From Monocercomonoides exilis PA203 (taxonomy: Eukaryota > Protista > Preaxostyla), in contig LSRY02000073.1 of NCBI GenBank assembly GCA_001643675.2, positions 51,671-115,670 on the forward strand: 64,000 nt of DNA, given 5' to 3'. The translations under genes were made by a program, and so were the position numbers. Below, one piece after another: positions 1 through 24,126 of this stretch; the stretch's first letter is position 1, and each line of letters opens with the position of its first letter. The notes under the pieces are model-generated. The model had not been told where the DNA came from. It worked only from the letters and a program-made list of their open reading frames with translations, and did not search any database.

Positions 1-608
1 ACACATATAAAAAATTACGAATTGTTTTTGTGGAGCATTTATTTCACTATCAAAAGGATGGAACAAAAATAATTAACATGGACGAAACTTCGTGGAACAT
101 CGATTGCATCAGAAGATATGGCTGGGCCAAAAAGGGAGAAAAATTACTTGTGCCGCCTCCTCCAATCACTCAGTCTATAACAGGAATAACGTCAATATCA
201 CACGATGGGATGGACTTCACTGAGCTAATTCGAGGATCTGTCACTCATGAAATTTTTGAGTCATATTTGAAAAGGTTTTTAATGACTATAAAGGATGAAG
301 ATTCATCCGTCGTAGTGATGGATAATGCTTCTATTCACCATGTTCATGTGGATGAAATCATTCGAGAAGCTGGGCATTTTGCACTGTTCAATGCAGCATA
401 TTCACCGGAATTAAATCCGATAGAAAATATCTTTAGCATATGGAAGCAAAAGGCAGAAGGAAATTCTCTCAGATGGGAAGGTGAAGATCATTTTATAGCA
501 ACTCTATTGAAGGCTTTTAAAGAAATATCGTCTCGTGTTTTTAGAAGATCAATAATGTACGTCGAAAACGAAGTCTGGCCTCGAGTTCTCGAAAAAAAGG
601 ATTTATGA
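1..608 (+). CDS. Tc1/mariner-IS630 superfamily DDE transposase, C-terminal catalytic part (5' end outside window)
   Basis: Motifs NMDETSW, VVVMDNASIH and YSPELNPIE. The frame is open back to base 3 (TYKKLRIVFVEHL...). 33 residues separate the second D from the E. Confidence 0.9.
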   Translation, partial: TYKKLRIVFVEHLFHYQKDGTKIINMDETSWNIDCIRRYGWAKKGEKLLVPPPPITQSITGITSISHDGMDFTELIRGSVTHEIFESYLKRFLMTIKDEDSSVVVMDNASIHHVHVDEIIREAGHFALFNAAYSPELNPIENIFSIWKQKAEGNSLRWEGEDHFIATLLKAFKEISSRVFRRSIMYVENEVWPRVLEKKDL

Positions 609-1397
609 ACATTCATTTTTATTTTTTATTCATTTCGAATTGATTTTCTCGTTTTTCAATTTCACAATTTTTCAAACAGAAAGCAAAGAATAAGAAACTA
701 ATAGCTTGTTTTTTTTATTAAAAAATTGTTTGTTAAATGAATAAATCTGAAAATTGAAAAATCACACAGAGAATTTTTTATTCCAAAATACGGAGGTTGT
801 AATATTTCTATTGAAATACTCCAATACAAATGTTTCTTCAAAATAAATGCAGTTCGCAACTTCTTATTTTTCATAAACTGTGGAAATGATTGCAATTCGA
901 TGTTTAACTTTCAAATTTGAATAATGAAGTGAAAAAAATATAATGAAAATTGAAAAGACTTTTTAATTAATTCGTCATATTTGTTTTCAAAGAATAAACA
1001 CTATATTAGTTAAATCATAAATTGTTTGAACATATATTTTCAGTAGAATCATCAACAAACAAAAACAACAACAAACAAACACAGCTCTCAGGATTAATTA
1101 ACTTCTCCATTATCTTCATTAATTTCCGATTCATCTTCACGCTAAATGGAATAAATCTTTAAAAAATATTAATGCAGTAATGAAATCAAGCATAATCAAA
1201 CTTTTACACACTTTTACACTATCAATTGCATTGTTAAAAGTGAAAAACGCTGAAATGCAAGATGTTTATTCCTTTTTTCTTTCCATTTGTAAAGAAGATG
1301 TTTGAAAAATATTGAAATATGGTTGCAAAGTTCATTTCATATCATGGTATGATCAACTTTTTTTTCGGACAGATCAACTTTATTTCCGGTCAGACTG
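1..1397 (+). mobile_element. Right portion of a Tc1-like element ending ...CCGGTCAGACTG|TA
   Basis: The terminus reads CAGT on the minus strand and is followed by TA (1398-1399). Two subterminal direct repeats GATCAACTTT.TTT.CGG.CAGA lie at ~1351-1394. The left TIR is outside the window. Confidence 0.6.
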
Positions 1398-2439
1398 TAA
1401 TTATTTTCATGATGAAAAATGTTGTTATTTGTTTTGTTTGCTTTGGAAAAAGCAAACGGAATAAAAAGATTTTGTTTGTTATTGTTTTACTTATTCAACA
1501 ATAAAAGAAAAAAATAATTTTTCTTCGAAAAAATTGTTGTGGGATAAATATGAAATGTTCAAAGATAATAAAATTGTGCAAAAAAAAGATAATCGCAATA
1601 TTGTCAATTAAACATCTGCGTTACATACCTTCTGAAGTGAACATTTTTGGAGTGACATGACGAAACAGAAATAAATATTATTCACTCATTTAAATTAAAA
1701 ATTTTGAAATTAAAAATTGAAATGCAAAGAAAAATTGAAATATATTAGTGATTATCTTTGAAATCATAACTTTTTTCGGTGTAATGATTTCTCCAATATT
1801 GTTTGATATTGGGAAAAGATTTTGTATTCAAATGCTAAAATTATCACAACTGTTTCAAAAACAAATGCTTTCACTGCAATGAAAAAGAAGATATTTTGAA
1901 TAAACCTATTCATGTTTTTTTTGTGTTTTTATGTTGATGTATTAAATGAATACTTAAAAACGAAATTATTTGATTGAGATAATATGATTTCAAAAATAAT
2001 CACACATATTTTAATTTTATTAAATATAATTTTGTGTTTCAAAAAAAAAATTATTATTATTTTGTTATTGTTCATTTTCAATTCAATATAATGAACAATG
2101 GGTTGTATCGTGATCTTTTTTTGTGGTATAAATACAACGTCACAAACGTCACTGTCTGTCACTGACGTAATTAAAGTCAGGAAGTCGTTTTTTCAAATGT
2201 TTTTGTTTTTTTCAGGTTGAAAATATTCTTTAATACAGTTTTTAACTTCACAAAGTCATCCAATTATTGTTAGTAAATAATTTATATTTTTTTAATTTTT
2301 CTTTAGTATTTTTTCTAATTCTTTTTGATAAAAAAGCAGGTTTTTCACAAGGAGGTGGATCAAACTGACGAGATGCTTATTTAAACATAAACAATTATTG
2401 AATTTCACATACTGAGTGTCAGATACAAATATGTTTTCG

Positions 2440-3732
2440 GGTGAAATTGTGTGTGCTATTGTGTGAACGGTAAATGCGTTTTCCTTGTTCAGCGATGTGC
2501 AGATGGGCGACTGTACAGGACACAAAAAGCTGCGGCTGTGGCTGGGGCTGGGGACGCACAGGCAAAGCTTTGTGTGGAACTCGGGGCCTGCGGGAAGGGA
2601 AATGTTTGTGGAGTGCCTGAACATATGGCAGCAGGCGCGCGACTTGGAGTTCACACTGAAAAGCGAGCAGCATGAAGGAGCGAGCCGGAACGAGATCGGA
2701 GGATGCGACGAGCTTGTGGAATGTGTGGAGGAAAATGAGATGGATCTGTTTGAGGAAATCCGACTCCTGTGGGATAGGGAATTGCTTGCATCTTCAACGG
2801 CAGGAGGCAGGACATAGCAGCGGATGTGCTGGACGCAAGATGCGGAGGAGGAGCGTCTGCGCAACGAGTCGGAGAAGACACAGTATGTGGTGGGATATCT
2901 TCTGATATTTGGAGAAGAGAGTTGGATGCTGTGTTCGCAAAGGAAGAGGCTGCTTGTGATTGAGAAGTGCGATGTGAGGGGGAATGTTCAGAGCCAGAGC
3001 GAGCAGGATGTGATTTGGAAAAAAGTGCAAGTGTGGAGGGTGCTTGAGCAGTGTATCCACATTTCCATTCACTTATGCACGGGGCAGATAAGGAAGAACG
3101 TGTGACAACATGTCAGTTTAATAACATTGGAAAGATCACCTGGCTTCTAGGGAACAGGAGGATAGGCTCGGATGTGATAGAGGAGAACTGGGCAGAAGAG
3201 GAGGCGGTGCTCAGGCTGAGTGTTCGAGCGAGGATCTGACTGCGGAGTTGTGGGCAGGGGATGAAGGAGAATAATGAAGTACAGTGGACGTGCTTGATGA
3301 AGGAGGTGAGGGAAATGCGACAGCACGGATTGTTCTGAAGTGGAAAGGTGAAGTGGCACATTGGAGGCAGAGTCGGAGTTTGGAGCAGAGAAGGAAGTGT
3401 GTCGTGTGAAGGGGTGGGAGGATGAGTGGTGGATGATGGAGGAGATTCTTGCAGGAGAAAGAGGATGGGGAAGAGGGGAAAGCTCAGCAATAATTTTATC
3501 TGTGTTTGATGCATTGATTAAGCAGTGCCTGAGCATGGAGGAAGGAGAGCGGCCTTCGCTGAACGAGATCAAGTTGGAGCTCACGAACTCATTTGAGGTG
3601 TGGTCATTGAAGCTGAGCGGAGAGCAGGCACTTGAAAATTGCGAGGAAGAAAATGAAGAGGAGATTGAAGAAGAGAAGGAAAAAGAAGAAGAAGAGGAGG
3701 AGGAAGGAGAAAAAGAAAAAGAAGCAAGATAA
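2440..3732 (+). pseudogene. Fragmented protein-kinase-like gene (C-lobe remnant plus acidic tail)
   Basis: GC-richer island with broken ORFs. FDALIKQCLSMEEGERPSLNEIK resembles kinase subdomain XI (LI..CL...P..RP). Multiple stops and frameshifts. Confidence 0.5.
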
Positions 3733-4239
3733 AGATAAAGATAAAGAAAGATGAAGAAAATCAAAAAGTTTGAAACGAATCAATTCGATGGACACTAACT
3801 TTTTATTTGTTCATGGTCAAAACTCTCACAAAGGATCAGAGCAACAGTTATATGAAAACAACAAATAAAAATAATAAGAGACTTATATTGTCATGAACTT
3901 TTAATACAAATCAAATTGTTTTAAACCATTTGAATAACATAGTATTTTTATTCTTATTCATGGATAATAAATGTCTTATGTCAATTATTATTTAAAGACG
4001 ACATATCAAATGATTTTTTTGTTAAAATATTCAACTGAAAAATGAAAAGGAATAAATTGTCTCTTGCGAATTGCCAAAAAGCAATATTAAATCATGAAAA
4101 TTAAGTCTTTCGAAGAAAAAATTTGTTGAAAATGAAAAATCACTTTCATTTAAAGTTTTTAAAATAAGAATAAGAATAAAAATGAGACACTGAAAATATA
4201 GCTTTTAAAACATTTTAAACTGAATTGGAAAATTATGAT

Positions 4240-4479
4240 GTGTCAAAATTTTTTTGAAAAATTCCTTTTGTTTCATTTTCAAATAAAATAGAAATTACAT
4301 ATTTTCATCAAATTTCTATTCTCACTCACCAAAATTCGCTGTCATGAAAACAAAATCTGAACAATATTCTTATTTTCATTCTTGAAAAGTTTCGTGAGTG
4401 AGAACAGAAATATGATGAAAATATGGAATTTCTATTTTATTTGAAAATGAAACAAAAGGAATTTTTCAAAAAAATTTTG
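4240..4479. mobile_element. MITE-like foldback (~86-bp arms), related to the MITE at 23888
   Basis: 4244-4329 is a near-perfect reverse complement of 4394-4479. It shares TTTTTGAAAA...TGTTT.ATTTTCAAATAAA...CA.TCACCAAA with 23888-23985. Confidence 0.75.
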
Positions 4480-5624
4480 GTATGTTAATTTTCATAGAAT
4501 GATTTGACTTCAGTCAAAGTGTGAAATTGTTATTTAATTTTTAAATAATTAATTAAGGTTTATTGATTGTGAATTGAGTGGATATTTTTGTTAAAAAAAT
4601 ATTGAATTATTGGAAAAGGTTTTATCCTTTTCGAAGCATAATTTTTTCAAAAATTGTTTGTTTTTATCGAAAAAAAAAATAAAATAAAAATAAAAATAAA
4701 AAAAAGTGCTGGGCACTGACTGACCCGAGCCCACCTTCTTCAAAATGATGCAGATGTTTATTGTGAATAACTCTGGGTAACACATTGACTTCCAACGTGA
4801 ACTTCATGATTTTTGATTGACGTGACAAAAAAATCCACGTCACAAGAGTTATCCGAAAGATTTTTATATATGATTAATAATTTTTAAAAAATTTATCAAA
4901 AAGAGGTTTTTATCAATTTGCATATGTTATTTTTTTAAAAAGTGATTATTATATTTGAAATCATATTTCTTTTGTCAAAATTTTCGATTTGTTTATTTGT
5001 TTTGAATACTCACAAAAGAACACAAAAAAACTAAAGATCTATTTAATGACTCCTCTTCAATATTTTTCCAAGTCAAACAATAGCTTTTGAAACGATAAAT
5101 GAACATTTGAATTGGAAAGAAAATAATAAATCAAATGACAATGAATTATCATTAAAACAAACACCCCGAAAAAAGTTATTATCTAAAAAATTATCATCCA
5201 TGTTTTTATTGAGTTCAAACAATGTGAATTAATGATCAAAATTGTATTCTCCTGCGAAATATGAAAATAAGTGAGGAATTTTCAAAATAGAGAAATATTG
5301 ATTCAAAATAAATTAATTAATCCAGAAATTTTTATTTTTTGACTGTGAAAAGTGACATCACAAGTTATCACGAGCAGATACTCCCAAAAAATAGTTGTAA
5401 AAAATCATTCTCATATATCTGATCCTTTTTGAAATCATTCTTTCATTCCAGTTTGAACAAAAACTATATCTTAGTGAGATTTCGAAAATTTGAACTAAAA
5501 CTGTTAATACATATTGTTTATGACGTTATTGTTGTTAAAACAAATTTTGACAAAAATCCCATAGAGATTGAATTATTGATCAAAACTTGAATGAAAGAAT
5601 GGTTTCAAAAAAAATCAGCCATAT

Positions 5625-8600
5625 GGGTAATTATTTTTGGGATCGTAAAAAATTTCGATGTCATTGAAAATTTTATCTTTGCTATTTTTGCCTTTTTCTA
5701 ATTTTCAATTATATTGTTTTAATATCCATGAAATTTCTAACCGTGAGATTGTTAAAAATTCGGAAATTGTTCCATGTTTACAAAAACATCTTTGAAGGAA
5801 TACTTAATTCGTTATGGGACAGATCAACAGTTTTTCAATCTTTTCACTTCTCAACAGAGAAAATGAATCCACACAAGTTACGCAATTCTCTGTTCCTGTG
5901 CTCATCAGCCACGCTCACCATTGACAGATTCGAGTTTTGGAACAGCAGCAGCTTAAATGTTGAGTACAGGATCATTTACGTAACAAATGGGAAAGCTGAA
6001 TTGAATGGATGCAAAATGAAGGACTTTGTAATGGGAAATGCTGAGATTATTGCACTTGACGGAAACGATGCTGAGTGTTCAATTGAAGGAATGGAAATGT
6101 CAAAGCTGAGCAGAGAAGGAGAAGGATCACTGCCTTTGGTTGCGAGAGGGAAAATTTTGGAGGTTGAGAACAGCGGCATTGAGAATTCAACAATGCTCAA
6201 CAGCAGCCACATTACAATTAATCCACTTGCAAATGGTCTTCTGAAGAATGTGACATTTACAAATCAGAGCAGAACAAACAGTAATTGAGGAGTGATAATG
6301 GGCGAATTGTGTGCTGGCGAGGTGTTGAGTGTGGAGAACTGCTCATTTATTCGCTGTATTTGCTATTCTGGGAGAACGATTGGAGGGTGCGTGCTGATGG
6401 ATGTAAAAGAAAATGGCGCATTCCGATTCGAGAGAACCAAAGTGGAGTTCTGCATTGTGTCCAGCGGAGATGGATTTAGCAGAGGGCTGTTCCTCACATT
6501 CACCTCTTCACACGTCGATTACTCGATGAGGAACAACACGTTCGAGAACAAAAGCAATGATATTTTGAAGAAATGGAAAGTTCGAGCTGGTTGAAGGAAG
6601 TCGCTCAACCACCCTTTCATTTTCCAAGCTTTGCTTTGTGCTTCCATCGTCTCCCAATCCTTCACCTGAAATGAGTTCTCTTATTGAAGATAGCATTGGT
6701 CAATGCTCATTCTTAGATTGCACATTTGAACAAGGAAGCAGCAGTAATTCCAACCCTTCGAAATGGATTGTTTCAGGAGGTGGAGGAGTTGTTCACTTTG
6801 ACTCCTGCACTTTCAGCAATATTCCATTTCAGACAGCTGGGGTTGTTTTTATTGATGGAGCATCGCTTTTGTTGGAGGCCTGCAGCTTTTCTTCTATCTC
6901 TTCTGACGCACGAAAGGGTTTGATAACTGGAAGCGGGAATTGCGATATAACGCTGAAGGATACAGGATTTGCGAATTGCGAGACGACAAATGGACATGTG
7001 TTGGAGATGACTCGACCGAAGTCTGTTGAAATCTCAGGGGCATGCACATTCGAAGGATGCACTTCGACAGAAGGGGATGGAGAGGCTCTTTATTGTTTTC
7101 TGGAGAGAGAAGGATCTTTGACTATGAACAAAACATCAATTGTGTCTTGTGAAGTGAATCAGATTAATGGGAGAGGAGGCGGAATCTATCTCGATTTGAG
7201 GGAGAATGTCAATGTCTATTTATTTTCTGATTTAACATTCAGCGGAAATGAGGCGTTTGAAGGGAAAGACATGTTTGTGAGAAGCGCTGATTTGAACGCG
7301 TCAATCATTCCATCTCTGTTTGATTTCGAGTATTTTGGAGCAGACGGAGAGACAAAAGTCGATCTGAAAGGAAGAGATGAAACACATTTTATGAGCGCAT
7401 CTGCGGATCTGCTGTATTTTTTGGTGAAATATTCTTCATCGACAATAAGCGTTGGATCGGCTGGAATCGACTTTATCTGGTGTGAAAAGGCAGAAACACC
7501 TTGTCACTCGTTGTGGTGGGGCATCAACAACTTGCAAGCAATTGAAGACTCGCAGTCGTGCTTTGTTGAAATTCTGGATGAAGTGGCAATATGCGAGCGC
7601 TATGAATTTGTCCTTTCTCAGCTCAGCATTGGATTGCCTGCCGCAGCTGCTTCACCTGCATTTTCCGAACTGTCGATTTCTCAAACAACAGACGGCTCGA
7701 GCCAGTAGATTTTCAGCTCGAATAATTCGCTTTCGTTTTGTTCTGTGCAGTTCCATCTGCCTGCGTTCTTCTCAAATGGACAGTCTTCTGTTGTTTCATC
7801 GTCTGACGGATATCTCACCTTCAACTCAACCTCGTTCCATTCGGATGCCACTTCTGCGCTGGAATATGTTCTGCTGTCGAACAAAGGAGGAACAGCTGAG
7901 CTGCTGAATGTGTCTGTTTCTTCGTTAGTGTTTGCACGCTTCCCCTTCGCGCTTTCGTCTTATGTCACGCTCGAGGAGTGCTGCTTTCACAGCATTTGCT
8001 CTCCCACAGGCACAGATGGCGGTGCAATGTCTGTCTGTCTGGAGCGATCAGACCTGCTGCGCGTGAAGAGCTGCCGAGCTAAGCTGTGCAAATGCTCCAC
8101 AGGAAGAGGCATAGGAGGGTTTTTATATGCAGATTGCTCGAAATCGACAGCAACAGCACCACTACGATTTGAAGGTGAAATGGCGTTTGAGAGAAATGAT
8201 GCGCAGCTAGGCAAAAACATATTTATTGCATCTACTGAATTGATCTCGTCAGTCTCTTTGGCAATGTTTGCCTTCTCATTCGAGGCAATGAAGGGCGACA
8301 GCAACGCATTTGTGGGGATTGAAGGAGAAAGCGAAGAACTGGATTTATTCAGATATTTGGTTTCTTATTCCTCGGCTTCAATTTTTCTATCGGAAGACGG
8401 AGAGGATGCGATGAGACATGGAAGCACAGATGATCCATGCTGCTCGTTCTGGAAAGGGATGCAGCAGATCAGCAACGAGGCCTTGCCAAAGCTCATTTCC
8501 ATTACCAAATCCACTGAAGTTGCCAACACCTTCACTCTCTCCAACTTCACCATCTAATCAAACTCATTGGAAGAAGAAGAAAAACGGGAGTCGAAGCTTC

Positions 8601-8989
8601 TGTTTATAGAAAAGGCAGGAGAAGTATCTGAGCCGTTTTTGTATGAGAAGGCGAGCTTTCGTTGAAGCTTATAACACTTGTAATTGTATCATCCTTCAAC
8701 AATTCGGCAACAGCTTTGGTTCAGTGCGAGGATGGGGTGCTGAGTCTGGCGCAGTGTGTGTTTGGAACAGAAGCAGGGCTTGGTGGAATGCGGCAGAGCA
8801 GGTGCAGTTTTGTTGTCTGCTTGAAAGGGAAACTTTCACTTGTAGATGTGTCAGTGGAGTCGACCAGCATCGCGAAAAGCGCAATTATAATAGGCGCAGG
8901 TGTTTGTGAGCTCAAGAACTTCACATGCTCGTTTGTAAACATTTCAGATGGGAGCATCTTCGAGGTTATTGAAGATGATGAACAACAAA
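5625..8989 (+). repeat. Left giant TIR
   Basis: Reverse complement of 13383-16747. Identity ends after GATGATGAACAACAAA. Confidence 0.95.
5860..8989 (+). pseudogene. Captured, disrupted Cys-rich beta-helix (pectin-lyase/Pmp-like) surface protein gene, copy 1
   Basis: Consecutive ORFs 5728-6288, 6292-6594, 6638-7708, 7745-8557 and 8662-9006 carry GGG(I/A)Y, F..C and C....PC motifs like the intact 24957 gene. Broken by stops and frameshifts. Confidence 0.75.
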
Positions 8990-9566
8990 AGAGATACTTA
9001 TATTGAACGTAATGAAAACGTTTTATTTGAAAATTTTTGTTGATTTATTGTATTTTTTTGTGATATTTTCTTTTCATCTATACGTGCAAGAAAAAACAAA
9101 AATGCTTGTTTTCTATTTTGGAAAGAAGATTTATATGTAATTCTTCGTGGAGAACAATTTTCATCTTTTTAGAATCATCACATTTGTTAATTGCTACAAT
9201 TTCGAAACTTCGTGGAATTGGTTTTTTTATTCAATTTGTTCTGCCTCTTAAATGTGATGATCCATAAATTGTGTTTCATGATTGTGAAAATGTATTTCTT
9301 TTGCGTGAGAAGATTTTGAAATAACTTTCAAATTAATTTTTCAGAACATATTTTTCACTTTTGATATCTGCTAATTATCTGATAATATCTGTTTCATTTC
9401 AGTATGAAAACATATTCATATAAATATTGTTCACACTCCAATTCTTATAATTTTAACTCTTTGTGAAAGCAAAAGAGTGAATTATCCATTATTTTTTTTT
9501 CGTGCAACCATAAGTATTTATTTGCATATTTGTCAAACTGAATCGACTTTTCTTCATTAATATTTA

Positions 9567-12500
9567 ATGAAAATAACAACTTCTTTATCAACATTGTCAA
9601 CTCAAGCTAATAAGGCTTGGAAAATCATCAGGCAAATCGGTGCAAACAATTTGGATGAGCTGATTTCTTATCTTCTTTACAACTTTAAAATATTCAAACA
9701 CGCCATGCATGAAGTTAAAAAAATCAATCAACAGTGTGATATCTTTTTTGCTATGCATGCATAATAAGCATTTGTCAAATAATCATTGTTTCTTATTTGA
9801 ATGATAATACTTTTTTTAAATAAGTATACGATGTTGCTAACGGATCTGACACAGTTTATGGAAAAGCTCCACTGCATAGACAAACTATGATCTTTCAAGC
9901 TTATGTTCGTAATTTATCGATAAAAGAAATTATGAAATTCTGTTTCAACGTTACACAAGGAAAAGTGAGCCACGCATAGAGAGTGCTGGAAAAAAATCAT
10001 GGAATTGTTACATACGCTTTATCTCCGACTCTTCCCCGAAGCAAAAGAGGTTTTTTTATTAATTTTTTTCATTATTAAAAAATTATTAAACTTTTATTTT
10101 TAGGATTGAGACACAAAGAATGGGAATTAGGGAACAATTGGATGCTTTCCAATTCAAGTGAAGCATCAACTTCCATGCATTTAACGAGCAAACAAAAGAA
10201 AAAAGAATGTTTTGATAAGCATTTCAATGAAGAGGAGTGGGACAAAGACATTTGTATTAATGATCAAAACAGAGAAATGAACGAAAAAGAAAAAATGTTC
10301 AATCCCACAGATCTACAGCCTTATTGTTCTCCTTTGCTTTTCAGTTTTTCTTCAAGAGGAAAACAGTCTTTGTGTGAAAACTGCAAAGATACAACGTCCA
10401 ATTTTAATCAAATATCAAGTAACATGACTACATTGAAAGCTTCTGATAATCCAACACACTCAAAAGGAATGAAAAATTTAGGGAATACGTGTTGCTTATC
10501 TTCATTGTTACAATGCCTATCTGCTGCATTACCACATCGTGAAAACGAAATTACAAAAATGGAACAAAAGACTCAATTATCATCCAAAATATTACAAATT
10601 TGCTATGAAATTCAAAAAGTGAATGGATTCTCCTTCAGTTGGAACAATGAATTTGTAGATCAATGGGAACAATGTTGTTGTTATGAAGCAAGACAACCTC
10701 AAAACATTTCGGATGCCTATACGAAAATGACTAATATTTTACTATGAAATAGTTGTATTCAAAAAAGAGACTTCATTTTTCCCACATCGTATTCTTCTAA
10801 ATGTTGTTCATGTGGGGAGGAGTCAATTCAACAAAACGATGAAACATTTGTGAAAGTAATTTACAGTTTTTCTCCCTGCAAAGGTTTGAGAAAAGAATTC
10901 ACTACAGAAATGTTGGACGATTCAAACAGAATTTTTTTTGTTCAACCTGCAAAAAACATTCAAGTGTAATCCGAAACTTGTTTTGTAATTCATTTCCTTC
11001 AGTTATTGCACTGTCTCATGAAAAATGTTCAGATATCAGCAACACTCCAGAGCTTTCATTAATAATATTTTCTGATACCAAAATACACAAAAGTTCAGTT
11101 GTGTATCATCAGAGAGAAAAATTCTCAATTGAAAATGAGAATTGCGGAAGAGTTGTTAAATACGATCTTGTTGGAGTAATTTAACACAAACCATTGCAGA
11201 ATATTTCTGGACATTATGTGGCTCTTGTTCGTCGAACAAACAGTATGAACTCAACATAGCAATTATGTGACGACTTTGATATTGACAATTTCGAAGAGAA
11301 AAAACTAATTGAAAAATGGAAGTCATTATTAACAGATGGGTTTTAGCCATCTTTATCAATTTACAAGAAAAATAAAGTTGGAAATGAAACTTTGAAAATG
11401 ACTAAAGGAGGAGTTGACACTTCAATCACTCATGAAAATATTTCTGTGACTAATTCCAAGTCTTTCAAAGAAGCAGTTCTTGGGGCCATGCAAAGATCCT
11501 CACATTTTACAGAGAAAATGACTACACAAGAAAGAAGCTCTTCACTATCTCCTTCAATGGTTCAAAGATAAGAAGGTGTTCGAGTTTTCTCTCCATTTCA
11601 GAAAAGACTCATTTTCAAGCCAAAAAACCAACTTTGGAAAGAATTTATGGGACAAACGGGAATAGAAATGTCGTTGTCACAATTCTATAAAATGACTGTT
11701 CAATTTTGCAAAGCAAAGAGAAGAACTGACATGTGTAAATTATGCAACATGCTTGAACAAATCGAAAACAAGAGGAAAACTCTTAATCAAGGTGGAAAGC
11801 TTCAAAAAGACGAAGAAATTGCTCACAGGCTTTTGAAAAAACATCAGGTGTTTGCTCATTGGCAACGTGATCATTTCAATAACAGTTTATCTTCTTTAAA
11901 AGAAAGTGAGGTGATTTGTCTTTTTGATTTTAAAGAGAAGTGGAGGACACCGATAACAGCGACTCAGGTTCAAGATGATTTTTACAGCTATCGTCAAGTT
12001 TCTCACTTTGCAATAATCACTTTTCAGAAGAGAAATTGTGTTTTCAACAAAAAAATTTACAACTTTTTGTCTGATAATCCAAACAATGATCATACTTTCA
12101 TTATCAACTGTCTAACATCTGTGTTGTCCAGATCAGCTTACAAACATACAAAAATGTTTAAGTTTTTTTGTGATTCAGGAGCTCACAACAAAAACAAATT
12201 TGTTCTGAACTTTCTTCTCTCTCACAAAACAACTTTCTTCCGAAACTCAAAACGCGAAGTTAGCTTCTTTGCGGAACACCATGGCAAGAATCTTTGCGAT
12301 GGAGAGTTTGGAATGCTTGTCAATATTATTCGGAATCATTTATCAAACGAAAAACTTGAAAGTGCATCTGATTTAATCACATTTTTCCAAAAGAATGCAA
12401 ACTCATTTTCTTCTTCATCTTTGAAAAAATCACAATTGCACTTGTCATCAGATTCAATCGCTACTGAAAAAATGAAGAAGAATAACTCTTATAACACAAT

Positions 12501-12840
12501 CGTTCAGAGATTTTTCGAAGAATACATATCAACAAACAACAATTCATATTCCTCTTTAATCATTCCGCATCTCAGAGATTATTTATATTTTGAAAGTCGA
12601 GGAACAAGCATATGCGGATCTGCTGTTAGCTTTATTCCTCAGCGTTTATTAATAGCTCTTGAATTTTCCATCAAGAAGGAGAAAGTGAAATCACAAAGGA
12701 TTGTTTCACAAAAACAACAAGAATCGCAATGTTTGAATTTTTCAAGTTTTTCAAATAGCATGCTTAAAAGAAGGTGCAATCTTGTTCGAGATTCGTCTGC
12801 ATTTTCGTCTCCAATCAATGATGACTTTTTTATTGATTAA
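9567..12840 (+). pseudogene. Intron-containing fusion gene: HTH-like region + USP (peptidase C19) domain + Sola-like DDD transposase; disrupted
   Basis: Cys box GMKNLGNTCCLSSLLQCL; Zn-finger KCCSCG and FCSTCK; His box YDLVGVI*H...SGHYVALVR...LCDD. The same frame runs into DMCKLC, LFDFKEK, FCDSGAHNKN and FFAEHHGKNLCDGEFG. GT-AG intron 10050-10103 joins exons in frame. Stops at 9977, 10745, 11182, 11257, 11344 and 11569, and a frameshift in the T-run ~10932-10939. Confidence 0.75.
11647..12840 (+). CDS. Intact 397-aa transposase catalytic ORF (RNase H-like DDD, Sola-like)
   Basis: Candidate catalytic Asp codons at 11926, 12172 and 12298. HGK..DG motif and upstream CxxC. Superfamily call is from recalled motifs, not a search. 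Confidence 0.7.
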   Translation: MGQTGIEMSLSQFYKMTVQFCKAKRRTDMCKLCNMLEQIENKRKTLNQGGKLQKDEEIAHRLLKKHQVFAHWQRDHFNNSLSSLKESEVICLFDFKEKWRTPITATQVQDDFYSYRQVSHFAIITFQKRNCVFNKKIYNFLSDNPNNDHTFIINCLTSVLSRSAYKHTKMFKFFCDSGAHNKNKFVLNFLLSHKTTFFRNSKREVSFFAEHHGKNLCDGEFGMLVNIIRNHLSNEKLESASDLITFFQKNANSFSSSSLKKSQLHLSSDSIATEKMKKNNSYNTIVQRFFEEYISTNNNSYSSLIIPHLRDYLYFESRGTSICGSAVSFIPQRLLIALEFSIKKEKVKSQRIVSQKQQESQCLNFSSFSNSMLKRRCNLVRDSSAFSSPINDDFFID

Positions 12841-13319
12841 TAAGCTCATTTTTGCGTATGCTTAGCTTTCATTCTGTTGGAAGAATGTGAGACAAGATAT
12901 CACACAATAGAAAAAACAACTGATCGTTGTTTTTTCCGGACCTGGATACGGTGTGATATTTCCCAGGTGCGCATATATGAAGTTCAACATGCTTATTATT
13001 AATAGATTGTCTTTTTGATATCTGATCGATTTACGTGATCAACAAACTTTCCTTGTTGAAAACAATTCAGTTTCTGATAATGATCTTTACACTTTTTTTC
13101 ATATTTGTTGAAAATATGAATTAATATAAGACTTAAATGAACATGTTTAATTTTTTCCAATGATATTCATTTATTTCAAGAATAAAAGTGAAAATGAAAC
13201 TTCAAGAATCATGATTTTATTATTTCTTAACTAGAAAACATTAAGGAATTCATCCAATTAACAATTAAATTCTTTTCACATGTGACAGTCGAAATTAAAA
13301 ACAGATTTTTGTTCGATTT

Positions 13320-16300
13320 CACAAACCATCATGAATAACTCGTTTTCATTCATCTTTCATTATTTTCATTCATTCGCGCATATTTGTTGTTCATCATCTT
13401 CAATAACCTCGAAGATGCTCCCATCTGAAATGTTTACAAACGAGCATGTGAAGTTCTTGAGCTCACAAACACCTGCGCCTATTATAATTGCGCTTTTCGC
13501 GATGCTGGTCGACTCCACTGACACATCTACAAGTGAAAGTTTCCCTTTCAAGCAGACAACAAAACTGCACCTGCTCTGCCGCATTCCACCAAGCCCTGCT
13601 TCTGTTCCAAACACACACTGCGCCAGACTCAGCACCCCATCCTCGCACTGAACCAAAGCTGTTGCCGAATTGTTGAAGGATGATACAATTACAAGTGTTA
13701 TAAGCTTCAACGAAAGCTCGCCTTCTCATACAAAAACGGCTCAGATACTTCTCCTGCCTTTTCTATAAACAGAAGCTTCGACTCCCGTTTTTCTTCTTCT
13801 TCCAATGAGTTTGATTAGATGGTGAAGTTGGAGAGAGTGAAGGTGTTGGCAACTTCAGTGGATTTGGTAATGGAAATGAGCTTTGGCAAGGCCTCGTTGC
13901 TGATCTGCTGCATCCCTTTCCAGAACGAGCAGCATGGATCATCTGTGCTTCCATGTCTCATCGCATCCTCTCCGTCTTCCGATAGAAAAATTGAAGCCGA
14001 GGAATAAGAAACCAAATATCTGAATAAATCCAGTTCTTCGCTTTCTCCTTCAATCCCCACAAATGCGTTGCTGTCGCCCTTCATTGCCTCGAATGAGAAG
14101 GCAAACATTGCCAAAGAGACTGACGAGATCAATTCAGTAGATGCAATAAATATGTTTTTGCCTAGCTGCGCATCATTTCTCTCAAACGCCATTTCACCTT
14201 CAAATCGTAGTGGTGCTGTTGCTGTCGATTTCGAGCAATCTGCATATAAAAACCCTCCTATGCCTCTTCCTGTGGAGCATTTGCACAGCTTAGCTCGGCA
14301 GCTCTTCACGCGCAGCAGGTCTGATCGCTCCAGACAGACAGACATTGCACCGCCATCTGTGCCTGTGGGAGAGCAAATGCTGTGAAAGCAGCACTCCTCG
14401 AGCGTGACATAAGACGAAAGCGCGAAGGGGAAGCGTGCAAACACTAACGAAGAAACAGACACATTCAGCAGCTCAGCTGTTCCTCCTTTGTTCGACAGCA
14501 GAACATATTCCAGCGCAGAAGTGGCATCCGAATGGAACGAGGTTGAGTTGAAGGTGAGATATCCGTCAGACGATGAAACAACAGAAGACTGTCCATTTGA
14601 GAAGAACGCAGGCAGATGGAACTGCACAGAACAAAACGAAAGCGAATTATTCGAGCTGAAAATCTACTGGCTCGAGCCGTCTGTTGTTTGAGAAATCGAC
14701 AGTTCGGAAAATGCAGGTGAAGCAGCTGCGGCAGGCAATCCAATGCTGAGCTGAGAAAGGACAAATTCATAGCGCTCGCATATTGCCACTTCATCCAGAA
14801 TTTCAACAAAGCACGACTGCGAGTCTTCAATTGCTTGCAAGTTGTTGATGCCCCACCACAACGAGTGACAAGGTGTTTCTGCCTTTTCACACCAGATAAA
14901 GTCGATTCCAGCCGATCCAACGCTTATTGTCGATGAAGAATATTTCACCAAAAAATACAGCAGATCCGCAGATGCGCTCATAAAATGTGTTTCATCTCTT
15001 CCTTTCAGATCGACTTTTGTCTCTCCGTCTGCTCCAAAATACTCGAAATCAAACAGAGATGGAATGATTGACGCGTTCAAATCAGCGCTTCTCACAAACA
15101 TGTCTTTCCCTTCAAACGCCTCATTTCCGCTGAATGTTAAATCAGAAAATAAATAGACATTGACATTCTCCCTCAAATCGAGATAGATTCCGCCTCCTCT
15201 CCCATTAATCTGATTCACTTCACAAGACACAATTGATGTTTTGTTCATAGTCAAAGATCCTTCTCTCTCCAGAAAACAATAAAGAGCCTCTCCATCCCCT
15301 TCTGTCGAAGTGCATCCTTCGAATGTGCATGCCCCTGAGATTTCAACAGACTTCGGTCGAGTCATCTCCAACACATGTCCATTTGTCGTCTCGCAATTCG
15401 CAAATCCTGTATCCTTCAGCGTTATATCGCAATTCCCGCTTCCAGTTATCAAACCCTTTCGTGCGTCAGAAGAGATAGAAGAAAAGCTGCAGGCCTCCAA
15501 CAAAAGCGATGCTCCATCAATAAAAACAACCCCAGCTGTCTGAAATGGAATATTGCTGAAAGTGCAGGAGTCAAAGTGAACAACTCCTCCACCTCCTGAA
15601 ACAATCCATTTCGAAGGGTTGGAATTACTGCTGCTTCCTTGTTCAAATGTGCAATCTAAGAATGAGCATTGACCAATGCTATCTTCAATAAGAGAACTCA
15701 TTTCAGGTGAAGGATTGGGAGACGATGGAAGCACAAAGCAAAGCTTGGAAAATGAAAGGGTGGTTGAGCGACTTCCTTCAACCAGCTCGAACTTTCCATT
15801 TCTTCAAAATATCATTGCTTTTGTTCTCGAACGTGTTGTTCCTCATCGAGTAATCGACGTGTGAAGAGGTGAATGTGAGGAACAGCCCTCTGCTAAATCC
15901 ATCTCCGCTGGACACAATGCAGAACTCCACTTTGGTTCTCTCGAATCGGAATGCGCCATTTTCTTTTACATCCATCAGCACGCACCCTCCAATCGTTCTC
16001 CCAGAATAGCAAATACAGCGAATAAATGAGCAGTTCTCCACACTCAACACCTCGCCAGCACACAATTCGCCCATTATCACTCCTCAATTACTGTTTGTTC
16101 TGCTCTGATTTGTAAATGTCACATTCTTCAGAAGACCATTTGCAAGTGGATTAATTGTAATGTGGCTGCTGTTGAGCATTGTTGAATTCTCAATGCCGCT
16201 GTTCTCAACCTCCAAAATTTTCCCTCTCGCAACCAAAGGCAGTGATCCTTCTCCTTCTCTGCTCAGCTTTGACATTTCCATTCCTTCAATTGAACACTCA

Positions 16301-16512
16301 GCATCGTTTCCGTCAAGTGCAATAATCTCAGCATTTCCCATTACAAAGTCCTTCATTTTGCATCCATTCAATTCAGCTTTCCCATTTGTTACGTAAATGA
16401 TCCTGTACTCAACATTTAAGCTGCTGCTGTTCCAAAACTCGAATCTGTCAATGGTGAGCGTGGCTGATGAGCACAGGAACAGAGAATTGCGTAACTTGTG
16501 TGGATTCATTTT
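13320..16512 (-). pseudogene. Captured surface protein pseudogene, copy 2
   Basis: Mirror of copy 1. Coding-like sequence continues a short way past the TIR boundary (QQICANE), so this is probably the original copy. Confidence 0.75.
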
Positions 16513-16747
16513 CTCTGTTGAGAAGTGAAAAGATTGAAAAACTGTTGATCTGTCCCATAACGAATTAAGTATTCCTTCAAAGATGTTTTTGTAAACATGG
16601 AACAATTTCCGAATTTTTAACAATCTCACGGTTAGAAATTTCATGGATATTAAAACAATATAATTGAAAATTAGAAAAAGGCAAAAATAGCAAAGATAAA
16701 ATTTTCAATGACATCGAAATTTTTTACGATCCCAAAAATAATTACCC
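13383..16747 (-). repeat. Right giant TIR
   Basis: Reverse complement of 5625-8989. Confidence 0.95.
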
Positions 16748-17035
16748 AAATTCTCTCTTTCTCAATTGAGGAGAATATGAGTCTTATTCTTTTTTTATGG
16801 TTGCAACAGTTTTTTTTTGTTTTATCTGAACATCTCTTTAATTTTTTCAGTCTTCACTTCAAGCTTTTTATTTATCTCCAAAAGGCCATCCATTTAGTGA
16901 ATAAAATATTGTATGATGTTTGCCTTTTCTATGGCAGAGTTTTAAGTGCACATCTCAAAAATTGTGAAAAACAATGTGGTTTTCAATTAAAGCATAAAAA
17001 CGGACGTTTGTGACTTTTCAAAAAGATTGACATAT

Positions 17036-20000
17036 GTGTCATTATTTTTCATATCGTAACTTTGTTCGAAGAAAGATCTTTATTTTAATAATTGTGGTAT
17101 GTTGAATTTAAAGTTAAAATATATGTTAATAAAAGCAGTGCTAAAAAATCTTGAATGAATATATAAACAAAATGGAGAATTTAAGGATATTTAGAAAATT
17201 CCATTATAATAATAATTTATACAAGAATTTTTATCATTACAATAATTTGACATCACGATGCCCAGCAAGTTCAGTTATTGCTTAAAGAAGATAATAATTT
17301 AAGTATGCTGAATGAAATAATTTTTTTATTGATTACAATTACATATCATCTGAATTTAAATGATGAATTCATTTATCATATTTTTATGTGAAAAAGCAAA
17401 TTTGATATTTTCATAGGTTAATATTTTAAGACCTTGTAAAAGTTTTGAACAACGCATATTCGATTAAGGATGATTAAGGAGGTTGAAGAGAAGTGATTAC
17501 ATTGAAAGTTGAAAGATAGAAATGAAATGAAGATAATTGAGGCAGAAAATGTGAACAACAAAGTTGAAGATGAATGATTTAATGACGATGAAAATATCGT
17601 TTTTTTTTGGAATAATTAGAATACTCTAATGTTTCATCAATTTTTTTCTTTTTTTTGTTGTATTTCAAAATTGTTTCCTTTCGAACATTTTCTTCATAAG
17701 TTTTTTTGAAGTATTAATTATTTTTGAAATGTGAACCTCATAAATGTGATTTTATTATGAGTATGTTCGAAAATTTTTAGAGATCATTTTAAACTTGAAA
17801 CATTTGAACATTGGAATTGAAAATAAAAAAACAAAAATTTTTAAAGTCTCATTAAACATTTGATTTTCTTTTGTGATTTCAATTTTTCTATTTCAATTGA
17901 TCTGCGAATTGGTGAAATGCAGAAAAAGTGAGAAAAAACAAGTGAACTCAATGAAAGCTAAAAAAAGTCACTTTCATACTGCTTTGCTTCATTTCGTTCA
18001 TCAACAGAATGCAAGTTCTAGACTGAATAGAAAGATATATACCGATCACATGTTCATTTTTCTGGTTTATTAAAACCGAAAACAAAAGAAAAACATATTT
18101 TGAGTTTGATTCATTTTTATTGGAAACACATTGCTGGAATAGATCATCAAATTAAATCACGTCCGTGAAGTAATCAATGAATAAATTCGTCAAACGAGAT
18201 TCTTCTGCTTATCTCTGATCATTCTTGCACGATATTATCTCTTGTATTTTTGACAGAACTCTCACATCCACCAAATTCCACTTCTCTTTTCCTTTTGCCT
18301 TGCATCTGCAATTTCTTCTTTTCAACTTTCTTCTTCTTTCATTCATCAATTTCATTCTTTTCTTATATATTCGACAAAGCGCTCCCTTTCATTCACGAGG
18401 ACTGAAATCTTCTGTGTCCCTATCTCGATCGTTGCCTCCTCGCTTTGATGATTCCCTTCCATCAGAGTGATTGCCAAGCTAATCTGCACCTCACACATCT
18501 CAAAGGCCTTCTTCACCGTCAGACAAGGAAATGTTTCATTTGCCCCACACGGATCATTCAGGACATTTCCACTCACTGAAACGAATATCGTCTTGTCCTT
18601 CAGCCAATCCTTCTTTTCCGTGTGCTGATAATACCAGCTGCTCCCAGTATAATGGTAGGCATAGCACATTCTCTTCTCATCTGTATTCGTTGTATAGCAT
18701 TCTTTGAACGGATTTCCTGACTCAAAACAAAGACCGTAATAATCTGCATATTCAACATCATGTCCATATGGAGTATTGGCAGAGCATTTGCATTCATGAA
18801 AGAAAAGGAAATAACAATAGATTCCATCATCAGGTTCTGTTGGTCTGTTTGGATGCAATCTCAAACCTCCTCCATTTGCAGTTGCTGAACATTAAATAAA
18901 TTGAATGCTTATAATCTTATCTTGAATAGGAATTTTTTTCCAAAGCATACCACCACTGTCAGTGCTTGTAAGTGAACATGATTTTGGGCTGCAGTCAAAT
19001 ACTCACGCACTCTCCTTTCCCTCATTTTCTGCTTCAATACATCCTGTTCCTGAAACCTGAAAATTATCAAGATAAAGTCCTCCTCCCCAGCCATAAGAAG
19101 AACATCTCCGAAATTCACATCCGCTGATTCGAGTGCATGCTGAAGTTGTATAAACACATATCCATCCTCCAATCCATGTTCGAGCAGTGCATGAGTCGAA
19201 TGTGTTATTTGTAATATCAGCAGATTTGATGTTGTAGCGAAGAATGCCTCCTCCAGAATAATACGCTTCTCATCCACTGAACGAATAGCATTTCACTGAA
19301 AGAATTCCAGACGATAAGCTGAACACGCAAATTGCTCCACCATAAGAATCATCATCAGCGTTTTAATTTTTATTCCCTTCTACATTTGATCCATTCCATT
19401 CGCACCAAATAAACGAATTTGCTCCATTATCCGTTTCGTTCTGTCTGTCTGGCTTCAATGGTACCTCTGCAGTTCCTTCACATTCAACATTCCTTGTCCG
19501 GCAGCATCCAATGAATGATGTGTTTGAGGCAGTCAAGGAATCCAAGGGGTTGTTGAGAGAGGGAACAATCCCACCATCATATGCATCACACACTGACGAA
19601 AATGAGCAACTATTCATAAAACTTGATGCTTGTGATAATGTAGTTGTTGAAGGTGAACATGCCTCATTTGCTGTTGAGATATTGAAAAATGATAATTTGG
19701 AGAGGGACATAAGGGGAATGGAAGGTGACGAGAGGAATGGGGCTGATGAGATACAAAAAGAGGAAAAACTCGATTCTGCCACAAAAATGTTCACATCAAT
19801 GCATTTTCTGTCTTCTTCTCTTTCTCCCGCTCTTCCTCCTTCTTCATCTCTTCCCCTTCCCTATCCTCCTATTCCTCCTCCACATTCTCTTTCACTCCTA
19901 ATCTGTCACATCTTTCCCTCCCCTCTTTAAAAACCTCCCAAAATTCATCTCTCCTTCTCAACCACGTCTATTCAATGAAATATTTATCAAAGTCCCAATA

Positions 20001-21069
20001 AGCGTTAATCTTTATCCGCTTCTTTCTGAAATTTAATAAATGAATATTGTAGTTAATGTATTAAAAAACCTTTTCTCAGCCAATACCTTATATAAAGAAT
20101 GATCCCATCAAGCTCTTTTCCAAGCTGATTCCGCTGATTGACCTTAACTTTCAATCGTTTGATGAAATTTCACTCCCTTGAAGTTTTGCAAAAACTCCAG
20201 CAAAAATGCTTTTGTTCTTACAAATAAAAAGAAAGACTTTACATCATATTTCAAAATGTGTCGAATAAAATCACAATTAAAAATTTCAGACCTTTATTCT
20301 CCTTTTATTTTGTCAACTTTTGTCTTGAAATCTCCGCTTTTCTCACCTCCTCTTCTCTTCCATCATCTATGTAAAAAGAAAAGCATATTGCATTTCCCAT
20401 TCTTAAAGAAACAGTTTTTAATTAATATTCTGAGGTGAAATCATATCTTCTTCAAGATAATGCCGAAATGTTCAGAAACCAAAGCATGAAAAAATCTTGT
20501 TTCAATTATGAAAAAACAACCATTCAAGCTTTCAAATCCATATTATCCTCTTCACCTCTTCTGCCTCAATTATCTTCATTTCATTTCTATCTTTCAACTT
20601 TCAATGTAATCACTTCTCTTCAACCTCCTTAATCATCCTTAATCGAATATGCGTTGTTCAAAACTTTTACAAGGTCTTAAAATATTAACCTATGAAAATA
20701 TCAAATTTGCTTTTTCACATAAAAATATGATAAATGAATTCATCATTTAAATTCAGATGATATGTAATTGTAATCAATAAAAAAATATTTCATTCAGCAT
20801 ACTTAAATTATTATCTTCTTTAAGCAATAACTGAACTTGCTGGGCATCGTGATGTCAAATTATTGTAATGATAAAAATTCTTGTATAAATTATTATTATA
20901 ATGGAATTTTCTAAATATCCTTAAATTCTCCATTTTGTTTATATATTCATTCAAGATTTTTTAGCACTGCTTTTATTAACATATATTTTAACTTTAAATT
21001 CAACATACCACAATTATTAAAATAAAGATCTTTCTTCGAACAAAGTTACGATATGAAAAATAATGACCC
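17036..21069. mobile_element. Non-autonomous Pack-type element with ~512-bp TIRs and ATAT target duplication
   Basis: 17036-17547 is the reverse complement of 20559-21069 (about one indel). Ends GTGTCATTATTTTT...AAAAATAATGACCC, with ATAT at 17032-35 and 21070-73. Confidence 0.85.
18300..20640 (-). pseudogene. Disrupted Cys/Ser-rich beta-helix surface protein family gene carried inside the element
   Basis: ORF pieces 19363-19794 (SSVCDAYDGGIVPSLNNP) and 18352-18864 (CGANETFPCLTVKKA), separated by frameshifts and stops. Confidence 0.7.
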
Positions 21070-21111
21070 ATATAAAAGTTAATGTTTTTTTAATTGAGTG
21101 TTTTTCAATTC

Positions 21112-23887: not shown

Positions 23888-24126
23888 GGGTTATTCTTTT
23901 TGAAAAGTCGCAAATGTTTAATTTTCAAATAAATCAAAACTTTTATATTTTTCTCGAATTTTTGTTAACATTCACCAAATTCACTGATGTGGAATCTATT
24001 ACTTGATAATGCTATTTCATGAATTCTTGGGAAGATTCGTAAGCGGGAACAGAAATTTTGGCAAAATATGAATATTTTGATTTATTTGAAAATTTAACAT
24101 TTGCGACTTTTCAAAAAGAATAACCC
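23888..24126. mobile_element. 239-bp MITE of the GGGT.ATT/ATAT family
   Basis: ATAT|GGGTTATTCTTTTTGAAAAGTCGCAAATGTT ... AACATTTGCGACTTTTCAAAAAGAATAACCC|ATAT. Confidence 0.9.

Follow-up and report, generated by a model that had tools for sequence, protein, structure and literature searches.

What kind of genetic element bears inverted ends of several kilobases, made for the most part of host-gene sequence, and how do such ends come to be identical to one another? The question is raised by a locus at positions 5621-16751 of a 64,000-nucleotide stretch of the Monocercomonoides exilis genome (contig C73:51671-115670; hereafter the window), which we analyzed against the 82.3-Mb, 101-contig assembly of this little-studied eukaryote, which lacks mitochondria. 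We consider it probable that the locus as a whole is a decayed cut-and-paste transposon, whose arms derive from a captured gene and are kept identical by conversion. The element has a second copy on another contig, C14.

An inverted-repeat search recovered two arms, 5621-8989 and 13383-16751, of 3369 nt each and 4393 nt apart, and their direct comparison found a sole mismatch (5623 versus 16749), which falls inside the outermost four bases. The remainder, 5625-8989 against 13383-16747, is a perfect inverted repeat of 3365 bp with 0 mismatches, and both arms start with GGGTAATTATTTTT. On the plus strand the outer four bases read ATAT at the left (5621-5624) and AAAT at the right (16748-16751). 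The 3365-bp arms and their ATAT/AAAT flanks are therefore as described in the original prediction, which had been made from the letters of the window alone. The features of the element are the following.

5621-5624, no strand: left flank tetranucleotide ATAT, the target-site duplication copy, shared with the flank of an adjoining small element; read from the sequence.
5625-8989, plus strand: left arm, a terminal inverted repeat (TIR) of 3365 bp, identical to the right arm; from the inverted-repeat search and direct comparison.
5625-5879, plus strand: element-specific terminal region, beginning GGGTAATTATTTTTGGGATCGTAA, with about 94-95% identity to the C14 copy, the only other place where it occurs.
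5880-8974, plus strand: pseudogenised internal fragment of a giant beta-helix/Pmp-like gene family, corresponding to amino acids 153-1311 of the frame at locus L023.
8990-13382, plus strand: core of 4393 bp, collinear with the C14 core at 86% identity (divergence K about 0.15).
10106-11380, plus strand: remnant of a USP (UCH, C19) deubiquitinase domain, with the Cys box in the open reading frame (ORF) 10106-10747 and the His box near 11150-11230; intact relatives carry UCH and the transposase domain in the same ORF.
11647-12840, plus strand: 397-amino-acid ORF with a DDD RNase H-like transposase domain (D94 at 11926-11928, D176 at 12172-12174, D218 at 12298-12300).
13383-16747, minus strand: right arm, a TIR of 3365 bp, the reverse complement of the left arm; from the same search and comparison.
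16748-16751, no strand: right flank tetranucleotide AAAT, one change from ATAT; read from the sequence.

The core has no TIRs of its own among the repeats that we looked for, and a weaker inverted repeat continuing into it scored 26 in local alignment, which is not significant against shuffles (24.6 +/- 2.9). No families of direct repeats of 30 nt or more were detected between window positions 4000 and 18500.

Long perfect palindromes are a known artefact of long-read sequencing, and all the read sets derive from one sample and one study, such that a fold-back, a collapsed repeat, or arms homogenised by polishing had to be considered. We checked the structure against 31-mer Logan contigs from four short-read runs of the same sample. 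These contigs span the core without differences, while the short-read unitigs begin or end exactly 30 nt (k-1) within each arm at both inner junctions, as is expected of a true repeat with two continuations. One short-read contig from 2016 spans 13297-13586, the words covering both inner junctions are present in short-read contigs of the 2016 and 2022 runs, and bins specific to the arms have about twice the depth of the core. Moreover, the diverged second copy has the same plan with arm-specific changes of its own, and its arms retain two mismatches and two indels, so polishing leaves at least some differences in place. On this evidence we regard an assembly artefact as extremely unlikely.

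The second copy, at C14:1091381-1103537, shows the same arm-core-arm plan with the same ends, and has ATAT on both sides. The window core matches C14:1095667-1099738 at 87%, and the window arms match C14 on either side of that core in inverted orientation; overall the copies are approximately 13-15% diverged. Collinearity between the two loci holds from end to end with two exceptions: both window arms lack a 382-bp segment, and close to the right end of the core there is a 273-bp indel. The C14 arms are longer, at 3717 bp, and are 99.9% identical to one another. Its two ends read ATAT|GTGTGATTATTTTTTGAG and ATAT|GGGTGATTATTTTTTGAG, and a 21-nt subterminal sequence occurs genome-wide only at the four ends of these two copies. 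Paired termini with a 4-bp duplication do occur elsewhere in the genome, as had been anticipated, and the core was not found with unrelated TIRs: the C14 core bears the same arms and ends.

Homology between the two copies ceases on both sides at the start of the terminal motif, beyond which the DNA is unrelated. This bears on whether the structure might simply be a palindromic segmental duplication of host DNA rather than a transposon, which is conceivable in that the gene family found in the arms also forms large inverted pairs without transposon ends, as on contig C36. We nevertheless hold this to be very unlikely, as the homology stops at precisely the base where the family signature starts, the flanks are ATAT, and the C14 copy interrupts a repeat with room for four bases.

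The two flanks of the C14 copy belong to a single dispersed repeat family. In a paralogue of this repeat on contig C2, homology to the left flank extends as far as 925665 (query base 399 of 400), and homology to the right flank begins at 925674 (query base 3); the equivalent boundaries on C15 lie at 1003037 and 1003046. Once the query bases outside the alignments are allowed for, the gap between the flanks is exactly four bases at both sites, and two more paralogues have the same gap to within one base. We interpret the C2 and C15 loci, from this spacing, as paralogous empty sites for a 4-bp duplication, the kind of site that had been proposed as a check. The ATAT/ATAT of the C14 copy and the 4-base gaps of the paralogues both point to a 4-bp target-site duplication. 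A comparable empty site for the window copy was not found in the genome, its left flank being another transposon and its right flank unique. Together, the second copy with the same termini, unrelated flanks, ATAT on both sides and paralogous 4-base empty sites support the proposal that the window element is one mobile unit, namely an old DNA transposon. It is no longer autonomous, since its transposase gene is broken.

The terminal signature extends well beyond these two copies. ATAT|GKGTNATTNTTTTT has 1397 matches in the genome versus 0 in the reversed control, with many of them forming inverted pairs 230-250 bp apart. Without ATAT, GKGTNATTNTTTTT has 3284 matches versus 165 in the control; ATAT thus precedes 1397 of approximately 3100 non-random signature ends, or nearly half. 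These counts indicate a preference for AWWT targets, with one nested insertion at ACAT. The latter, at locus L011, is an element ending GGGTGTTTTTTTTTTGATATC nested around position 2168 in the transposase ORF of another family member. As the same site is uninterrupted in three sister copies, L003, L005 and L007 (GATCACATGAAATG), the comparison assigns the ACAT before GGGT to the target.

With the genome full of elements of this signature, some of which carry gene fragments, one might also envisage a composite, in which two 3.4-kb non-autonomous Pack elements came to lie inverted around a transposase remnant, in the manner of bacterial composite transposons. This appears highly improbable: the inner arm ends lack both the terminal signature and ATAT, nowhere in the genome does an arm with these termini stand alone, and both copies are full arm-core-arm units.

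The left flank of the element is itself formed by a small member of the group, a miniature inverted-repeat transposable element (MITE):

5417-5620, no strand: palindromic MITE of the same terminal-signature group, flanked by ATAT/ATAT, which abuts the left end of the element and is not part of it; hundreds of genome copies match the window from 5413/5419 to 5621-5624.

Homology to these copies ends at 5624, indicating that the 11-kb element adjoins the MITE's own flank. The window holds palindromic MITEs that measure 0.2-0.25 kb, share the end signature and are flanked by ATAT, both here and at 23888-24126. Just upstream of the first one, at 4244-4479, lies an inverted repeat with 110-nt arms that are 89% complementary, separated by a 16-nt spacer. 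A further 4-kb element at 17032-21073 has 524-bp TIRs of 99.2% identity, ATAT|GKGTCATTATTTTT ends, ATAT flanks, and gene-like ORFs on the minus strand. Its TIR recurs at many loci as inverted pairs 3.5-5.5 kb apart, which suggests that long TIRs are common in this transposon group. At C1:2697920-2709165, GTGTGATTTTTTTT recurs every 350-356 bases on one strand, a spacing that suggests a tandem, satellite-like array descended from a member of the group.

We then considered what the arms are made of. Their outermost 255 bp or so (arm positions 1-259) is common only to the C14 copy, while positions 260-3354 have matches of 78-89% to loci on C36, C60, C24 and C89. Over the full 5.4 kb retrieved at each of the C36, C60 and C24 loci one frame remains open, and the arm corresponds to an internal portion of such a frame, with stops and frameshifts in both copies. 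Given that it is internal to giant ORFs elsewhere and is interrupted in this manner, the captured DNA is, as read from these alignments, a dead internal gene fragment and not a gene. The suggestion that the TIRs were built from a captured host gene is therefore upheld as to source, given the match to the interior of the giant ORFs, and must be amended as to what was captured; the ORFs in the arms, originally taken for a gene, are fragments of a pseudogene. Pfam searches of the giant family returned nothing significant. A feature search groups it with Preaxostyla proteins and with bacterial right-handed beta-helix and Chlamydia Pmp-like families, which we treat only as a lead, and the family is probably surface-exposed. 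Two segments of such giant ORFs on C36, at 1294567-1298022 (plus strand) and 1345851-1349306 (minus strand; loci L018 and L019), lie inverted 47.8 kb apart with 98.4% identity and constitute a large inverted duplication of host genes lacking transposon ends.

The divergence of the copies stands against the near-identity of the arms within each: the cores differ by a K of 0.15, as opposed to 0 differences in 3365 bp between the window arms and 4 in 3717 bp between the C14 arms. Three changes are specific to the window, namely GGA to TGA at 6286, TCG to TAG at 7706, and the 382-bp deletion at 6546; each is found in both window arms and is absent from the C14 arms and all paralogues. Furthermore, in 150-bp blocks across 6671-7270 the window arm is only 74-83% identical to the C14 arms as against 91-96% to the paralogues L018 and L023-L025, with the reverse pattern seen at 8471-8770. 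This patchwork implies that patches have been exchanged with dispersed paralogues and subsequently spread to both arms.

The inner ends of the arms provide a further pointer. On one side of C14, the match to the giant gene continues about 170 bp past the repeat, to amino acid 1358, while the other three arm ends stop near amino acid 1311. The boundary of the near-perfect repeat in C14 lies 43 bp short of that in the window. In the right arm of the window, gene-derived bases are overwritten by the left arm's version, after which gene-like sequence resumes. On the alignments this pattern is consistent with arm-to-arm gene conversion whose tracts end at variable points, and likewise with one arm having been copied from the other, the longer fragment being the likely original. 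Based on the shared nonsense mutations, the deletion and the 43-bp boundary shift, we conclude that the arms evolve in concert by arm-to-arm conversion. Copying of sequence from one arm to the other, a central element of the original prediction, thus finds support in the lineage-specific stops and deletion present in both arms, the longer C14 fragment on one side, and the shifted boundary.

The identity of the arms might alternatively reflect youth, with the arms having formed separately and recently in each copy, or one arm having been replaced once, very recently. There are only two copies to judge from, each with near-perfect arms, and the same picture would result had each copy undergone just one long event of conversion or re-synthesis. 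Yet the copies share their outer ends, the start of the fragment at arm position 260, and almost the same inner boundary, which implies that the arms predate the split of the copies. In addition, the mosaic of paralogue-like patches in both arms would need repeated or late homogenisation, which amounts to conversion in any case. We accordingly consider recent origin of the arms unlikely.

Conversion between the arms has parallels in the palindromes of the human Y chromosome and the plastid inverted repeat, which likewise combine near-identical arms with diverging spacers and orthologous copies, and in which mutations, including deletions, spread to both arms. Here, in contrast, the palindrome forms the ends of a mobile element, and there is patch exchange with dispersed paralogues as well.

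As to the enzyme, the 397-residue ORF in the core is 45-47% identical to two M. exilis proteins of 624-626 amino acids, and its family has at least 70 genomic copies, with open frames of 1050-1300 amino acids. In intact relatives a UCH/USP domain (PF00443, E 4e-17, above the Pfam cut-off) is followed in one frame by the conserved C-terminal domain; examples of such intact USP-DDD fusion ORFs are L012:972-3389 and L004:962-3454, both on the minus strand. In the window copy the USP part is split by a frameshift and several stops, and a further stop separates it from the ORF at 11647-12840; the transposase gene of the C14 copy is likewise broken. Between the two copies the ORF has a synonymous divergence (dS) of 0.34 and a nonsynonymous-to-synonymous ratio (dN/dS) of 0.4.

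A profile search with the domain recovered 1311 homologues, including ones from Blattamonas and Heterostelium, with an invariant pattern of D, D, H-G-K and D, and D94, D176 and D218 are invariant in 89 diverse homologues. Cluster look-ups of the distant homologues gave mostly metagenome proteins, the named ones being from Blattamonas and Heterostelium, and a second word-index protein search, run with another alignment, gave only three, uninformative, matches. Pfam DUF7869 matches 13 of 79 homologues, and a feature search groups the family with animal clusters that carry DUF7869, a domain mentioned by no paper in our literature search. Looking up P0001 and P0002 in public assemblies for full elements with flanks returned no record.

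The AlphaFold model is of moderate quality (pLDDT of about 65-89 in the core) and has the topology beta1-3/alpha/beta4/alpha/beta5/alpha, in which strand 1 carries D94, D176 comes after strand 4, and the next helix bears D218, all three at catalytic positions. The best matches among solved structures in Foldseek are RNase H-like enzymes, including Hermes, retroviral integrases, IstA, and P element transposases. The model thereby places the DDD triad on a predicted RNase H-like fold, and the domain architectures indicate that the group's enzyme joins a USP deubiquitinase to a DDD RNase H-like transposase, its gene being broken in the window copy. Hence, of the originally predicted 4.4-kb unique core with a DDD transposase, the ORF and its invariant aspartates stand, whereas the core is not unique, being present in C14, and the gene as a whole is broken. 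To our knowledge, the papers that we consulted contain no example of a deubiquitinase fused to a Sola-type transposase.

The USP-DDD enzyme is probably the one that pairs with these particular termini. The candidate 3' end of the abundant subfamily (GAGTTTTTTTTGAAATGG...) is conserved about 750 bp downstream of the ORFs and had no inverted partner at up to three mismatches, and the 3' end of subfamily B (ATATGTTCC...) likewise had none, being represented by three single ends only.

To which superfamily might such an element belong? Members of the Sola superfamily, of which Sola1 is one group (Bao, Jurka and Kapitonov 2009, as described in PMC3845634 and PMC10741241), have DDD transposases and 4-bp duplications, with TIRs that range from 11 to 1124 bp and total lengths that can surpass 15 kb (PMC10741241), and AWWT is the hallmark Sola1 target (PMC3845634). 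The window element fits Sola1 in that ATAT and AAAT both match AWWT and its enzyme is of the DDD type. It thus shares with this group cut-and-paste movement with TIRs, the DDD enzyme, a 4-bp AWWT duplication, variable TIR length, and large size, and the insect Sola1 TIR (PMC3845634) and the local MITE ends bear a loose resemblance in sharing GG....TT..TTTTGAAA. It differs in that its TIRs, at 3.4-3.7 kb, are three times as long as any reported and are largely made up of captured host DNA, and in that its enzyme is fused to a USP domain. Ginger2/TDD, which also targets an AT-rich quartet, was considered and rejected, there being no match to rve or another integrase in Pfam scans of the ORF and its full-length relatives. 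A Sola-like identity, as originally proposed, is hence retained for the target and the enzyme (PMC3845634, PMC10741241) and fails for terminal bases 1-11.

Several observations weigh against our interpretation and its Sola1 component. Membership in Sola1, which we moderately favor, was judged by the published hallmarks of AWWT target and DDD enzyme. Terminal bases 1-11 do not align with the insect Sola1 TIR under the Repbase rule, which allows one mismatch (PMC4455052); by eye about 5 of the 11 positions agree with that TIR (PMC3845634), the likeness lying further in, at TTTTGAAA. The termini of Sola elements are very variable (PMC10741241), such that this mismatch constitutes weak evidence against Sola1. 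The window ORF itself has no direct match to Pfam DUF7869, and any sequence link to Sola1 is an indirect one, by way of the homologues with this domain. As for mobility, both of the only two copies in the genome have a broken transposase gene, and current mobility is therefore not supported; the ATAT/AAAT flanks of the window copy form an imperfect duplication; ATAT is palindromic, so that flank and terminus are indistinguishable by inspection alone; and the empty-site argument is one of spacing. Finally, the structure is backed by the assembly and short-read contigs, and assembly polishing could slightly inflate the identity of the arms.

Comparable systems of sequence capture and long inverted ends are known. 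Pack-MULEs and the Pack-type elements of plants carry host gene fragments between transposon ends that are moved with the element, and a host gene fragment likewise lies between the TIR ends here. However, those elements belong to another superfamily, whereas the present one keeps a decayed USP-DDD gene in its core, contrary to the Pack-type definition of having no transposase gene, and has the fragment duplicated into both inverted ends. With foldback-like and other long-TIR elements it shares inverted ends that are very long relative to the element. Foldback arms, though, are made of short tandem subrepeats around little or no unique core, as opposed to the arms here, which lack such subrepeats, and the 4.4-kb core that is retained. 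Our literature search found no paper combining M. exilis, transposable elements and the assembly.

In light of these comparisons, we propose that an ancestor of the element acquired, beside one of its ends, an internal stretch of a giant beta-helix/Pmp-like host gene. The terminus and most of the captured piece might then have been copied in inverted orientation to the other end, yielding TIRs of 3.4-3.7 kb. As two copies exist, the whole unit would have subsequently transposed at least once. Since then, the arms have probably been kept identical by arm-to-arm conversion, while also exchanging patches with paralogues in the genome.

A transcript reading through arm, core and arm would be expected to fold into a 3.4-kb double-stranded RNA matching the giant family. 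By analogy with the action of Mu killer on Mutator in maize, the element might perhaps serve as a mobile hairpin silencer or regulator of that family, with the arms also acting as donor cassettes for its gene conversion. The genome encodes at least four loci with Piwi domains, and patch exchange with paralogues is observed, both of which bear on this idea; among the sequencing runs found to contain the stretch, none is of RNA. We nonetheless rate such a role as quite unlikely.

If our interpretation is correct, a cut-and-paste transposon can carry inverted ends of several kilobases consisting mostly of captured host sequence, approximately threefold longer than the longest Sola TIR that we found in the literature. 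Such ends can stay identical over long periods, for which the synonymous divergence of about 0.34 between copies serves as a measure, via gene conversion between arms. Dead gene fragments on a mobile element would also swap sequence with a giant gene family that is probably surface-exposed. The locus also anchors a large transposon group, with about 1400 signature ends, at least 70 enzyme genes, and a transposase-deubiquitinase fusion. These results should be of use for the annotation of the M. exilis genome and for the natural history of Sola-type elements, and overturn no general principle.

The element lies approximately 43 kb from the chromosome end, the window terminating in an 18S rRNA gene followed by TTAGGG repeats. 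This eukaryotic 18S gene spans 2.97 kb (57154-60124), is missing the usual 3' end, and passes directly into some 3.9 kb of TTAGGG (60085-64000), with neither a 5.8S nor a 28S gene downstream of it up to the window end. From its sequence, the chromosome end looks like a truncated ribosomal DNA unit capped by a telomere.

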